A stretch of DNA of 62,905 nucleotides, the filler included, from Octopus bimaculoides (taxonomy: Eukaryota), in the NCBI RefSeq assembly GCF_001194135.2. It is 6 parts of 6 records of this genome, joined end to end, with 100 filler letters (N's around TTAATTAATTAA, not from the genome) between each part and the next. Parts side by side here need not be neighbours in the genome. Positions count along the whole stretch, not along the records: positions 21,635 to 37,523 come from NC_068985.1; 5 more parts are not named here. One strand, given 5' to 3'. Numbering within the stretch: the stretch's first letter is position 1; each line of letters starts with the position of its first letter. Below the pieces are notes generated by a model that was given only the letters and a program-made list of their open reading frames with translations, was not told where the DNA came from and searched no databases. Shown in pieces: positions 34,177 to 37,523 of this stretch. The translations under genes were made by a program, and so were the position numbers.

Positions 34177-34310
34177 TGTATGTGTGTGTTTCTGACCCCA
34201 TCACTGCTTGACAACTGATGTTGGTGTGTTTACATATCCATACTGGAGCAGTTCAACAAAAGATACTGATAGTAAAAGTACTAGGCTTAAAAAACATATA
34301 ACTTAAGTCC
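33945..34310 (+). mobile_element. SINE family B, degenerate
   Basis: GGCACCTTGGGCAAG...AAGAAGCCCG...GCTTGACAAC blocks. Confidence 0.7.
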
Positions 34311-34381
34311 CGGAGTTGACTTGTTACTTTCTGTGCAATATCAATATATTTAAAGTGCCCACTTTTATTTCATTTTTAAAG

Positions 34382-34441
34382 CTAAGAGAGAGCAACATGC
34401 TGAAGATAGTGAGCCCAGATATTTATTTCTGAAACACCCAG
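34382..34441 (+). CDS. Tyr-motif micro-exon T5
   Basis: TTTCATTTTTAAAG acceptor and CAG|GTAAGT donor; 60 nt, phase 1-1; encodes KREQHAEDSEPRYLFLKHP. Internal A|GTGAGC at 34408/34409. Confidence 0.78.
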
Positions 34442-34684
34442 GTAAGTACAATCATTATTGTAAGTACATAGTATGTTCTTAAAAACGATCTTAAAGAAAA
34501 ACCAATGATCATGAAAGTATACTCTCTTTTTGTCTGTTAACATATTTCTATATACATGTATGCGTGTGAGAGTGTGTTTGAGTTTATCACATTAGTGTTT
34601 ATTATGGCAATATCATAAGAATACTAACATGATATAAATGTAATTTATAGCCATGACTTAAATTTTTGCATTAATTTCTTACAG

Positions 34685-34726
34685 ACATAGATGATGTTTA
34701 TGTCAATGTTTCAAGGAAACCTGATG
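34685..34726 (+). CDS. Tyr-motif micro-exon T6
   Basis: TAATTTCTTACAG acceptor and G|GTAAGT donor; 42 nt, phase 1-1; encodes IDDVYVNVSRKPD. Confidence 0.8.
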
Positions 34727-34948
34727 GTAAGTACATAAGCAATCCATAAATTAATTACATATTATTTTTTATATTTAAATATTGGTTTCTTATGCCAGGC
34801 TGCTAAGCTCTCTTCATGTAAACAAACCAACACTCATTGTCAAGTGGTGATGGCAGTGGACGAACACAAAGATATATATGCTCTCATATATCTATCTATC
34901 TATCTGTCTGTCTATCTGTATGTATGTATGTATGATTGTGTGTGTGTG

Positions 34949-34983
<35 letters not shown>

Positions 34984-35192
34984 TTTCATTGTTTAACGTC
35001 TGCTTTCGATGCTAGCATGGGTTGGACGGTTTGGGAAGCAAGCTGCTTATCACATAGTAATACCTGTGCCTATGTATGTTTATATATAAACTATAGAATT
35101 TCTTTTTTTTGGCTTCTTTCTATGCAACATCAAAAATTTAAATCAACCTCTCAAAACAATAAATATGCCCATTTTTATATAATTTCTTGTAG

Positions 35193-35219
35193 CTGTAAAA
35201 GCGTAGCATGCTGAAGTTA
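35193..35219 (+). pseudogene. Stop-containing 27-nt exon copy T7 (pseudo-exon or truncating exon)
   Basis: TTTCTTGTAG acceptor and A|GTGAGC donor are both intact, but there is an in-frame TAG at 35204-35206. Its paralog T10 has CAG at that codon. Confidence 0.6.
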
Positions 35220-36196
35220 GTGAGCATGAATATTTATATATAAAAGAAATGGCTAATTAATATAAATATTGTTAGTGCACAGCATGATTTTATAAATTAT
35301 CTTTAAAAAAATTAATGACTTGTAGAGACAAGGTATTTCGTTAGCCAAACACATTACAGTACAAAGTATATTAAACCATTTTATAAGTCAATATCATGTA
35401 CTACTGAGTTATCTGTGCTCTTAAATCATGTGTTCAGGTCATCTCTACCGTTTTTATGTTGGAATTATAGCCAATATTGATTTTGTTATGACATTTTGTA
35501 TCTGAGATGCCAGATGTAAACAAACACTGGAATTGAATATAGAAAAAGGAGAATGTAGTATATGCCATATTTCAGGAGCTTTTGCCCTTTTATCAGCACC
35601 TATCCAACCCATTAATCATCCATAAATTCATTGTTTGAATAATCACTATATCTACTTTGTTGTTGGTTTATATCTGGCATATCAGGTACGAAATGTTGTA
35701 ACAAAATCACTGCTTCATTTATACAAATAAACTAAATAATTATATCACTAATATTGAATACAATAGATGCTTGCCTACACACGAAACACAAGATATTAAA
35801 CAGATATGCAATGGTGAATGTGATCAGCTTTAGTTGTTGAGTATCCAAAGGTACTCTAGCTTGTGGATTACTTTAGCAAGAAAGAAACCTGAGAAAGAAC
35901 CTAATTTCAATAAATGTATTTGTGAATGGCTACATAATCATTTTTAATTATCAATTAAATGTTGAAGTGATGGAATCAGTACAATACGTACTAAACATTG
36001 ATGGAATAAAAATTAGCGTCAGTACATTCTGAGATCATAACCCATTGAGGTGAGAGACTGATAGATAAAGTACTAGGCTTAAAAAAGTATATAAAGTAAG
36101 TCCTGAAGTTGACTTGTTACTTTCTGTGCAATATCAATATATTTAAAACATTCCCCCCAAACAATAAAGATGCCCACTTATATGTCATTTTTGAAG

Positions 36197-36256
36197 ATAA
36201 CAGAGAGCAAGATGCTGAAGATAGTGAGCCCAGATATTTACCTATGAAACACCCAG
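36197..36256 (+). CDS. Tyr-motif micro-exon T8 (duplicate of T5)
   Basis: TCATTTTTGAAG acceptor and CAG|GTAAGT donor; 60 nt, phase 1-1; encodes NREQDAEDSEPRYLPMKHP. Confidence 0.75.
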
Positions 36257-36500
36257 GTAAGTACAATCAATATTGTTAGTACATAGCATGATCTTTGAAA
36301 TGATCTTAAAGGAAAACCAACAATCATGAAATGTATATTCTCTTTTAGTCTGTTAACAAATTTCTACATACATATATGTGTGTGAGAGCATGTTTGAGTC
36401 TATCTCATTAGTATTTATTATGGCAATATCATAAGAATACTAACATGACCTAAATGTAATTTATAGCCATGACTTAAATTCTTGCATTAATTTCTTACTG

Positions 36501-36542
36501 ACATAGATGATGTTTATGACAGTGTTTCAAGGGAACCTGAAG
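36501..36542 (+). pseudogene. Dead exon copy T9 (duplicate of T6)
   Basis: Would encode IDDVYDSVSREPE, but the acceptor is CTG (CAG in T6) and the donor is ATAAGT (GTAAGT in T6). Confidence 0.75.
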
Positions 36543-37243
36543 ATAAGTGCATAAGCAATCAATGAAAAAATTACATGCACTGGAGTAAGAGCTCACAAAT
36601 ATCATGGTTCATTGTTTCATTGAGTAGTATAGACAGCTTAATGTATACCTTTTATCATTTACTTATTACAGTCATTGCATTGCAGCCATGCTAATGCCTC
36701 ACCTTGAACAAATATTGGTTTCTTATGCCAGACTGCAAAGCCCTCTTGATATGTAAATCCTTGCCAAAGTGACCTCACCTGTGCTTGTGAGACGTAAAAA
36801 GCAATAAGTCCACTCCACTGAGTGGTTGGTGTTAAGAAGGGATTCCAGCTGTAAAATATCTGCCAAATGACTTATAGAATTCTGGTACAGTCTTCTGCCT
36901 GATCTGTGCTTGTCAAACTGTCTGACCCATGCCAGTATTGAAGGTGGACATTAAATGACGACGACGATGATGATGTTGATGATATATATATGTTCATGTA
37001 ACAGGCATCTTTCAGTTTCTTTCTGCCAAATCCCACTCATGAGGTTTTGGTTGGCCTGAAGTTATACAAGAAAATGGAATTGGACTGAACCAGAGCCTTA
37101 TCACACAGTAATACCTGTGACTATGTATGATTATATATAAACTATAGAATTTATTTTTTTGGCTTCTTTCTAGGCAACATCAAAAATTTTAAATCATTCT
37201 CTCAAAACAATAAATATGCCCATTTTTATATAATTTCTTGTAG

Positions 37244-37270
37244 CTGGGAAAACGCAGCATGCTGATGTTA
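37244..37270 (+). CDS. 27-nt micro-exon T10 (intact paralog of T7)
   Basis: TTTCTTGTAG acceptor and A|GTAAGC donor; phase 1-1; encodes GKTQHADV. Confidence 0.65.
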
Positions 37271-37523
37271 GTAAGCATGAGTATTTATATATAAAAGAAA
37301 TGGCTAAGTAATATAAATATTGCTAGTAGACAGCATGATTTCATAAATTATCTTAAAAAAAATTAATGACTTGCAGAGACAAGATATTTCGTTAGCCAAA
37401 CACATTACAGTACAAAGTATATTAAACCATTTTATAAGTCAATATCATGTACTACTGAGTTAGCTGTGCTCTTAAATCAAGTGTTAAGGTCATCTCTACT
37501 GTTTTTCTGTAGGAATTACAGCC

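Follow-up and report, generated by a model that had tools for sequence, protein, structure and literature searches.

Small exons recur in tandem in one region of the Octopus bimaculoides genome (GCF_001194135.2), and the differences between the repeated units raise the question of whether exons are being lost there or whether the units work together. The window analysed is a stretch of 62,905 nucleotides, filler included, made of six parts of the genome joined end to end. The piece of interest covers positions 21,635 to 37,523 and comes from NC_068985.1. A sequence-only reading had interpreted this region as a single 1.8-kb tandem duplication in which each of the two copies had lost a different exon, T7 in the first and T9 in the second. 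To decide between these possibilities, the units, their splicing and their coding potential are considered in turn.

A tandem duplication of about 1.8 kb is indeed present. Using blastn and mafft, a direct repeat was found within the window, 34261-36052 being about 85-93% identical to 36053-37523 and beyond. Positions 36053-36576 match 34261-34760 at 85.5%, including a 22-nt indel (E 1e-152), and positions 37097-37523 match 35046-35472 at 92.8% (E 1e-180). The offset between the duplicated units is 1.79-2.05 kb. Unit 1 starts within a SINE-like tail (34247-34298), which matches positions 22657-22708. An Rfam search returned no family anywhere in the piece. The features of the region are collected in the table.

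Table. Units, exons and splice-site positions in the analysed piece (positions count along the window)
Feature	Position	Strand	Description	Basis or state
Exon A (predicted)	26295..26336	+	42 nt, phase 1-1, VVDNYETISDELY	sequence only: AG/GT flanks, single open frame
Exon B	30278..30319	+	42 nt, phase 1-1, AESAGATISSKPK	spliced to T5 in RNA
Exon C	33624..33653	+	30-nt T6-type exon (MDDAYVNVL)	AG/GT intact, homologous flanks
Unit 1	34261..36052	+	~1.79 kb; T5, T6, T7 pseudo-exon	blastn and mafft against unit 2
T5	34382..34441	+	60 nt, phase 1-1, KREQHAEDSEPRYLFLKHP (YLFL)	RNA unitigs, depth 97-122; sole open frame
T6	34685..34726	+	42 nt, phase 1-1, IDDVYVNVSRKPD (YVNV, Grb2-type YxN)	RNA unitig
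T7	35193..35260	+	decayed paralogue of the 60-nt exon	in-frame TAG 35204-35206; TAA 35258-35260
Unit 2	36053..37523	+	incomplete at piece end	blastn and mafft against unit 1
T8	36197..36256	+	60 nt, NREQDAEDSEPRYLPMKHP (YLPM, YxxM type)	RNA reads, sequence
T9 acceptor base	36499	+	T in the window (cTG)	A (cAG) in all DNA unitigs of four runs
T9	36501..36542	+	42 nt, IDDVYDSVSREPE (YDSV, YDxV type)	exact sequence in RNA, 60-nt exons on both sides
T9 donor, first base	36543	+		A/G/T among near-identical units and animals
T10	37244..37311	+	counterpart of T7	no internal stop; GT donor missing; TAA directly after

The number of copies was, however, underestimated by the sequence-only reading. DNA and RNA contigs run past the end of the piece, from 37520/37523 into sequence resembling that from 35488 onward (joints back 2033/2036), which implies a unit length of about 2.03 kb. 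At least five exon variants of the 42-nt type and at least three of the 60-nt type were found in RNA and DNA. The extra 42-nt variants in RNA are ACATAGATCATGTTTATGACACTGTTCCAAGGAAACC (YDTV), ACATGGATGGTGTTTATGTTAATGTTTCAA (YVNV) and a form with 36527C/36533A, and the RNA 42-nt variants are matched by DNA unitigs with GT donors. Distinct exon variants occur together in the DNA of each single animal, every one at single-unit depth. Unitigs of the exon core have a depth of 204-847 as compared to 21-100 for single-unit unitigs, about 6-15 times as much. This suggests an array of roughly 6-15 units, unit counts from unitig word depth being a rough measure. The number of units appears to differ between animals.

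Exons of these units are spliced one after the other. In RNA, exon B leads directly into T5, its last 30 nt being identical to the 30-nt loose end before 34382, and T5 is followed by T6 via a GT..AG intron. One 225-nt RNA unitig (X19 #5) contains T5 and T6, after which comes a 60-nt exon other than T5. Overall, a serial chain leading from exon B to T5, T6 and the next 60-nt exon is present at a unitig depth of 97-122. The joint from a 60-nt to a 42-nt exon (36255/6->36500/1) has a contig depth of 119/139/8 with 22/12/29 raw reads, and the joint from a 42-nt to a 60-nt exon (36537->36192) has 16/14/21 reads; with 150-nt reads and k=31 unitigs, an RNA read is not attributable to one particular unit. 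The 60-nt exon that follows a T9-type exon in RNA lies outside the window, beyond the end of the piece. Joints between two 60-nt exons that omit a 42-nt exon are few (0/1/3 reads). At the position of T8, most mapped RNA reads stem from sister exons starting with CTATG (36197C, 36200T, 36201G), and 36197 is C in all X1 DNA contigs. All exons are 30, 42 or 60 nt long and of phase 1-1, so that the frame is kept whenever a unit or an exon is gained, lost or skipped. Each has a single open frame, with the exception of exon B, which has two. This anatomy of the array and the serial splicing of its exons can be stated with good confidence.

Each unit encodes an acidic repeat of 34 residues with two tyrosines, xREQ(D/H)AEDSEPRYL(P/F)(M/L)KHP-D(I/M)D(D/G/H)VY(V/D)(N/S/T)V(S/P)R(K/E)P(D/E). 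YVNV is carried by T6, exon C and one RNA variant, YDSV or YDTV by T9 and its sister exons, and YLPM by T8 and its sisters. The difference that had been noticed between the 60-nt exons at the motif itself, YLFL in T5 versus YLPM in T8, was confirmed, as was that between YVNV in T6 and YDSV in T9. The claim that YDSV is a decayed YVNV did not hold, the main 42-nt forms expressed being YDSV and YDTV, on exons with GT donors. YDSV is therefore not a product of decay; it fits the Nck-type YDxV motif. The YDxV motif of nephrin was reportedly described as a ligand of the Nck SH2 domain by Blasutig in 2008, and Songyang and colleagues are said to have assigned pYxN to Grb2 and pYxxM to p85 in 1993. 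YDxV sequences are Nck SH2 ligands, with Tir among their carriers (PMC3507883), and nephrin YDxV is given as such a ligand in a further article (PMC11247170).

Is the repeat translated? In the best-surviving alternative, the array would be a transcribed and spliced non-coding repeat, either satellite-like or a lncRNA derived from a transposable element, with a frame and motifs that are incidental. Several observations are in line with it. A SINE-like tail stands at the beginning of each unit, and no protein homologue of the concatenated tail was found at E<=0.01. The Pfam search returned only a sub-threshold MHB match (25.5 bits versus a cut-off of 27.4), which is probably spurious, plus two matches at noise level that are treated as spurious too. 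Moreover, a comparison of exon with intron divergence, which had been proposed as a check, showed exons diverging no more slowly than introns: from unit 1 to unit 2, exons differ by 10.0%, 9.5% and 12.1%, as compared to 8.4% for introns, and 10/10 changes in the T5/T8 and T6/T9 pairs are nonsynonymous. Therefore, purifying selection on the peptide is not demonstrated. The reading frame nevertheless argues for a protein. The same single frame is open through exons A, B, T5, T6, T8 and T9 and through the variants recovered from RNA, which have no stop in that frame within the portions read, whereas the other frames contain stops. All exon lengths are multiples of three, with phase 1-1 throughout. 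The tyrosine, the valine at +3 and the acidic context are retained in all 42-nt variants, and splicing joins the array in frame to exon B, which is not part of the repeat. On balance, a non-coding repeat is improbable.

We then considered whether the exons described as lost are lost. T9 had been said to lack both splice sites and, in the window, it is indeed flanked by cTG on the acceptor side and by AT on the donor side. The first of these defects is contradicted by the DNA: A makes up 106.7/106.7, 204.1/204.1, 417.4/417.4 and 394.4/394.4 at position 36499 in the four runs. The T of the window probably reflects either a mistake in the assembly or a private variant. A non-canonical GT..TG intron at the 36255->36500 joint was also considered and ruled out, as the DNA reads cAG. 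The second defect is real but variable. At position 36543, the A of the window gives AT, which is donor-null, G gives the canonical GT, and T accompanies 36542A. X3, X4 and X5 have A, as does X1 by subtraction; in X2 there was no A and G accounted for 227.7/227.7. Overall, only part of the runs contain the donor-null AT and TT variants.

As an exon sequence, T9 is in use. T9-type exons are spliced efficiently, as the contig depths of 119-139 and the raw reads at the joint from the 60-nt exon show; for the exon sequence, this is the very outcome that the sequence-only reading had named as counting against it. The exact sequence of T9 was found in RNA (X26 contig, 0 mismatches), and is followed after 36542 by a loose end, CTATGAGAGAGCAAGATGCTG, that corresponds to a 60-nt exon not in the window. 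Among reads that cover the beginning of the 60-nt exon (97% likeness), the CTATG type of the sister exons accounted for 4/4 in X29, 9/9 in X30 and 1/3 in X28. Because nearly all of these reads are of the sister type, the data suggest that the exact T9 sequence in RNA comes from a sister unit whose donor is GT, the same reads not being seen to span both the 60-nt exon start and T9. Since the exact T9 is found spliced and reads are not assignable to units, it is also conceivable that the donor of the AT allele is rescued by A-to-I editing (AU to IU, read as GU), with the exact T9 still included. We regard this as a very slender chance. Double-stranded RNA that could serve as an editing substrate was not found around the T9 donor (fold z-score 0.02, no inverted repeat). 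If true, such a rescue would mean a splice site that exists solely after RNA editing, in an array of SH2-docking microexons of variable copy number.

The in-frame TAG of T7 is present as described, but its contrast with an intact T10 disappears on inspection of the donor position, which reads GGCTAAT in T7 and GGCTAAG in T10 as compared to GGTAAG(T) in T5 and T8. The region of T7 aligns with that of the 60-nt exon (35116-35307 versus 36120-36310, 74% match). T7 is not spliced in, its RNA contigs showing intron-level depth and about zero raw reads. Likewise, T10 had a raw depth of 0 to 0.35 in the covering bins at 97% likeness, no joints, and intron-level contig depth; for T7 and T10 together, raw-read depth was 0 to 0.6 per bin, again at 97% likeness and with no joints. 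T7 and T10 are dead exons, paralogues of the 60-nt exon that decayed long ago, and the TAG of T7 is therefore not a loss relative to T10. Each unit probably has such a third, unused exon copy, whose GT donor was lost before the last duplication of the unit. A relic 42-nt exon downstream of T7 and T10 was searched for and not found (local alignment score 31 versus a shuffle mean of 31.7 +/- 4.4). Exon C is clearly similar to T6 (score 104 versus a shuffle mean of 32); it had zero depth in the sampled RNA, in which exon B is joined straight to T5.

Reciprocal loss, that is, one 1.8-kb duplication with T7 dead in one copy, T9 dead in the other and YVNV turned into YDSV, thus draws on features that the window itself carries, namely the TAG, the cTG and AT around T9, and YDSV. 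The AT donor is moreover a genuine allele in most DNA runs, and the few joints that skip a 42-nt exon point the same way. Such a history is nonetheless very unlikely, given more than two units, a T10 devoid of donor and RNA like T7, an acceptor reading cAG in 4/4 DNA runs, efficient splicing of T9-type exons, and expression dominated by YDSV and YDTV from units with GT donors. From the proposed birth-and-death of cassettes, the turnover of units can be retained (T7 and T10 decayed, exon C unused, AT and TT donors variable), and the reciprocal loss cannot.

The window sequence itself has to be read with caution. Unit 2 disagrees with every DNA unitig at positions 36261, 36359, 36499 and 37247, and further at 37272, 37323, 37354 (+A) and 37360. 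Together with the N gaps in the piece and its end within unit 2, these mismatches show that the assembly is imperfect at this locus; unit 2 of the window is probably a flawed consensus, built from an array that the assembly collapsed. That the copies are merely haplotypes assembled in tandem, or a mis-joined collapsed repeat with no biological duplication, would agree with these defects and is hardly credible, because T5, T6 and the next 60-nt exon share one RNA unitig, reads place T9-type exons between 60-nt exons on either side, and the DNA of each animal contains several exon variants, each at single-unit depth.

Overall, the locus codes for an ordinary tyrosine-rich protein tail, expanded by repeats and built from serially spliced tiny exons; it is not a pair of reciprocally decayed duplicates. 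Most probably, the region is the 5′ border of a tandem array inside a protein-coding gene, in an animal genome rich in repeats. Every unit measures about 1.8-2.0 kb and contributes one 60-nt and one 42-nt symmetric microexon, and all of these are joined in series within one mRNA. Such an array could grow and shrink, presumably via unequal recombination, and tolerate damaged units, because phase 1-1 preserves the frame. The units may have diversified into Grb2-type (YVNV), Nck-type (YDSV/YDTV) and p85-type (YLPM) SH2 ligands. Tentatively, and at somewhat less than even chances, the peptide sequence would make the tail a disordered, multivalent and lineage-specific phosphotyrosine docking scaffold. 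The piece does not reach the N-terminal part of the gene, and a receptor tail, a membrane adaptor and a cytosolic scaffold are all compatible with the data.

These results illustrate a pitfall. Where a draft assembly has collapsed a repeat, the apparent loss of a splice site through one changed base can be an error of the consensus, and the RNA reads that cover the repeat derive from sister units. What stands is modest but real: a gene region, apparently specific to the lineage, where a cassette of two microexons is amplified about 6-15 times. Between 12 and 30 tyrosines could be present in the tail, in contexts of the Grb2, Nck and PI3K types, and splice-donor state, as well as unit number, appears to vary between animals. 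If the tail is phosphorylated, it would offer a case from nature in which the copy number of an exon cassette tunes the valency of a scaffold and the mix of its partners. This would bear on how condensates of multivalent pTyr and SH2 partners, for instance nephrin-Nck and LAT-Grb2, are currently understood.

Serially included arrays of tandem exons are known from the repeat exons of nebulin and titin and from the 54-bp exons of collagen. As in these arrays, small symmetric exons are here duplicated in tandem and all spliced consecutively, which lengthens a repetitive protein region. In contrast to them, the unit encodes a peptide that is short, acidic and probably disordered, with tyrosines resembling SH2 ligands, and not a folded or structural module; the units are only about 90% alike and their count appears to depend on the animal. 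Arrays of the Dscam type, in which tandem exons are mutually exclusive, also have diverged exon copies inside one gene, but the reads obtained here show consecutive inclusion (60-42-60-42...) and not the choice of one exon.

On the protein side, LAT has two YVNV sites and many small exons, the substrate domain of p130Cas has YxxP repeats, and Gab, IRS and Dos belong to the same group of docking proteins with multiple phosphotyrosines. The YVNV, YDxV and YxxM contexts form the grammar recognised by the SH2 domains of Grb2, Nck and p85 (for YDxV, PMC3507883 and PMC11247170). In a LAT-type transmembrane adaptor, the tyrosine tail follows a short ectodomain, a transmembrane helix and palmitoylated cysteines next to the membrane. 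Nephrin, also of this group, recruits Nck through three YDxV sites. Judged by its sequence, the octopus tail would resemble LAT, nephrin, p130Cas, Gab, IRS and Dos in its predicted disorder, its acidity and its spaced tyrosines in YVNV, YDxV and YxxM contexts. It differs from them in having no detectable homology and in that its motifs lie in a near-regular genomic repeat of 34 residues instead of being scattered. Tandem tyrosine-phosphorylation motifs also occur in bacterial effectors, such as the EPIYA segments of CagA, Chlamydia Tarp and the repeats of Bartonella Bep proteins. Like these, the octopus array would combine tandem repeats of variable copy number with a putative SH2-recruiting tyrosine motif in each; whereas the bacterial repeats lie within a single ORF, those described here are separate spliced exons of an animal gene.

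The piece studied (21635-37523) is AT-rich animal DNA with SINE-like repeats, microsatellites and N gaps. The tandem duplication claimed in the sequence-only reading was confirmed. Unit 1 (34261-36052) and unit 2 (36053-37523, truncated by the end of the piece) match at 34261-34760 versus 36053-36576 (85.5% identity including a 22-nt indel, E 1e-152), at 34777-34814 versus 36710-36747, and at 35046-35472 versus 37097-37523 (92.8%, E 1e-180). The unit middles differ by SINE and microsatellite insertions, so that the offset rises from 1.79 to 2.05 kb. Each unit begins within the tail of a SINE-like repeat (34247-34298, which matches 22657-22708). 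The exon-like segments were also found where that reading had placed them: the 60-nt exons T5 and T8, the 42-nt exons T6 and T9, and a third, 60-nt-exon-like segment per unit, T7 and T10. All are phase 1-1 with one open frame each.

Exon-like segments, repeats and intron motifs of the piece
Feature	Position	Description
Exon A	26295-26336	predicted
Exon B	30278-30319	
Exon C	33624-33653	30 nt, T6-type (MDDAYVNVL); AG/GT sites intact
T5	34382-34441	peptide KREQHAEDSEPRYLFLKHP
T6	34685-34726	peptide IDDVYVNVSRKPD
T7	35193-35260	TAG at 35204-35206
T8	36197-36256	peptide NREQDAEDSEPRYLPMKHP
T9	36501-36542	peptide IDDVYDSVSREPE; window flanks cTG and AT
T10	37244-37311	T7 counterpart; no internal stop
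SINE-like inverted pair	21636-21828; 26601-26793	193 nt, 96% complementary, 4.8 kb apart
Hairpin-like inverted repeat	23808-23897; 23973-24062	90-nt arms, 92% complementary, 75-nt loop
Interspersed repeat	26600-27570; 30385-31180	two copies, 78-90% identical; internal tandem repeats of ~66-67 nt (26776-26902; 30552-30738)
Motif ATTTATAGCCATG	33581-33593; 34643-34655; 36459-36471	~30-40 nt 5' of acceptor
Motif AATTATAGCC	~35466; 37515	weaker; downstream of T7 and T10

The SINE-like pair flanks exon A on both sides and might pair into a long dsRNA before splicing; the hairpin-like repeat looks MITE-like. One copy of the longer interspersed repeat lies directly after exon A, the other directly after exon B. 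The ATTTATAGCCATG motif precedes every 42-nt-type exon, the unused exon C included. The first base of T8 (36197), A in the window and C in all contigs of DNA run X1, decides the junction codon, GAT (Asp) or GCT (Ala).

Splicing of unit 1 was read from RNA unitigs of two runs, X25 and X19. In both, the last 30 nt of exon B were joined to T5. From T5, splicing led over a GT..AG intron to T6 (depth 97-122), and from T6 onward to another 60-nt exon; in X19 this whole chain lay within a single 225-nt unitig. A joint from a 60-nt exon to a T9-type exon (36255/6 to 36500/1) was present in three RNA runs at depths of 119, 139 and 8, precisely on the boundary equivalent to that of T6. RNA contigs continued from the T9-type exon into CTATGAGAGAGCAAGATGCTG, a 60-nt exon start absent from the window, being neither T5 (CTAAG...) nor T8 (ATAAC...). 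Raw reads of three further RNA runs contained 22, 12 and 29 joints from 60-nt to 42-nt exons and 16, 14 and 21 in the reverse order. Joints between two 60-nt exons, not attributable to a given unit, numbered 0, 1 and 3 in the same runs; such rare joints would look like the expected product of skipping a 42-nt exon. RNA raw reads also held two extra 42-nt exon variants, ACATAGATCATGTTTATGACACTGTTCCAAGGAAACC (IDHVYDTVPRKP) and ACATGGATGGTGTTTATGTTAATGTTTCAA (MDGVYVNVS), and most T9-type reads had 36527C/36533A, encoding IDDVYDSVPRKPE. The joints in both orders and the extra variants show that the exons are used consecutively and that the number of units clearly exceeds two. In DNA, exon cores reached depths of 204-847 as compared to 21-100 for unitigs specific to a single unit, which suggests, very roughly, an array of 6-15 unit equivalents; the number may vary between animals. 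The proposal of two copies thus fails on the extra variants, the foreign exon start and the exon-core depth.

Comparison of the two units, as the sequence-only reading had proposed, showed exons no better conserved than introns: 64 of 758 intron positions differ (8.4%), against 6/60 for T5/T8 (10.0%), 4/42 for T6/T9 (9.5%) and 8/66 for T7/T10 (12.1%). All ten changes in the used exons T5/T8 and T6/T9 alter the protein; frame, tyrosine, +3 valine and acidic context are common to all variants. This lack of exon conservation gives no sign of purifying selection on the peptide and would fit a spliced non-coding repeat. We nevertheless consider that reading unlikely, since a single frame persists, exon phases are symmetric and the junction to exon B is in frame.

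T9 had been described as having lost both splice sites. Position 36499 is A in unitigs of all four DNA runs, at 100% of depth in each; therefore the acceptor is cAG, and the cTG of the window is unsupported and likely an artefact. The AT donor is real in some DNA runs, and position 36543 varies among runs and units. On an otherwise window-identical flank, 36543A made up 37/88 in X3, ~54/276 in X4, 100/273 in X5 and, by subtraction, ~45/270 in X1, while in X2 the window-type flank carried G (227.7/227.7). G was also found in sister units having more diverged introns. A third form, 36542A/36543T (...GAAA|TTAAGT), is a second donor-disabling type, present in DNA of X1, X4 and X9 and not seen in that of X2, X3 and X5; like it, the AT form is present in some runs and absent from others. 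One DNA unitig, identical to T9 from 36513 to 36542, continues with a GT donor; another (36509C, 36522C, 36527C, 36533A, 36543G) corresponds to the YDTV exon found in RNA. RNA reads of exact T9 persist at 97% likeness. At this likeness the 60-nt exon start is nearly always CTATG, not the window's ATAAC (4/4 reads in X29, 9/9 in X30, 1/3 in X28), although the read summaries do not join both read ends and exact T9 and CTATG are not linkable on one read. Exact T9 most likely stems from a sister unit whose 42-nt exon is identical and whose donor is GT. That RNA editing restores the AT donor is scarcely plausible, the region having a fold z-score of 0.02 and no inverted repeat, and thus no structural support for editing. 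T9-type exons are efficiently spliced, as the 60-to-42 joint reads show; the AT-donor allele itself may or may not be skipped.

T7 and T10 showed intron-level depth in RNA contigs, and raw reads at 97% likeness gave a depth of 0 to 0.6 per bin and no joints. By a 74% match of 35116-35307 to 36120-36310, both are old paralogues of the 60-nt exons. Both have GGCTAA at the site of GGTAAG in used exons, so their decay is older than the unit's last duplication, and the T7 TAG is not, as had been supposed, a loss relative to a working T10: T10 equally lacks GGTAAG and RNA joints. The flanks of exon C are homologous to T6 (score 104 versus a shuffle mean of 32). This exon had zero RNA reads in four runs, exon B being spliced past it directly to T5, and is either silent or tissue-specific.

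Reciprocal exon loss between two copies is therefore very improbable, failing on each leg: RNA joints, unit number, 36499A, T7/T10 decay and divergence. From the earlier interpretation, general cassette turnover is what survives; the observation as a whole was confirmed in part.

Unit 2 of the window mismatches DNA unitigs at 36261, 36359, 36499, 37247, 37272, 37323, 37354 (+A) and 37360; at each position three or all four covering DNA runs disagree with the window. This suggests that the array was collapsed in assembly, with unit 2 as its imperfect consensus. Imperfect as the assembly is at this locus, an artefact of haplotypes or assembly pure and simple is barely credible, because RNA unitigs carry successive units and several exon variants coexist in every animal's DNA.

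Most likely, a two-microexon cassette was amplified as an intragenic tandem array, presumably via unequal recombination among units of 1.8-2 kb. Symmetric phase keeps the frame for any unit number and renders damage to a single exon harmless. The likely product is a repetitive acidic tail, probably disordered, with two tyrosines per 34 residues; no homologue and no Pfam family were found for this tail, and 21635-37523 does not include the gene's 5' part. YVNV is a classic Grb2 SH2 ligand (pYxN), and YLPM fits the p85 pYxxM class. YDSV/YDTV matches the YDxV motif, whose recruitment of Nck was reportedly treated by Blasutig et al. in 2008. The change from YVNV to YDSV is shared as a YDSV/YDTV type by several expressed units and resembles a switch from one partner class to another more than decay. 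From these motifs we infer that the tail may have a multi-tyrosine docking function.

Overall, the locus is quite probably a serially spliced tandem exon array encoding a multi-tyrosine tail, a known kind of system. Its main value lies in a corrected annotation and in a possible natural case of valency tuning in a phosphotyrosine scaffold. Nephrin recruits Nck via YDxV (PMC11247170); the bacterial effector Tir does so as well, and vaccinia A36R has a comparable phosphotyrosine site (PMC3507883).
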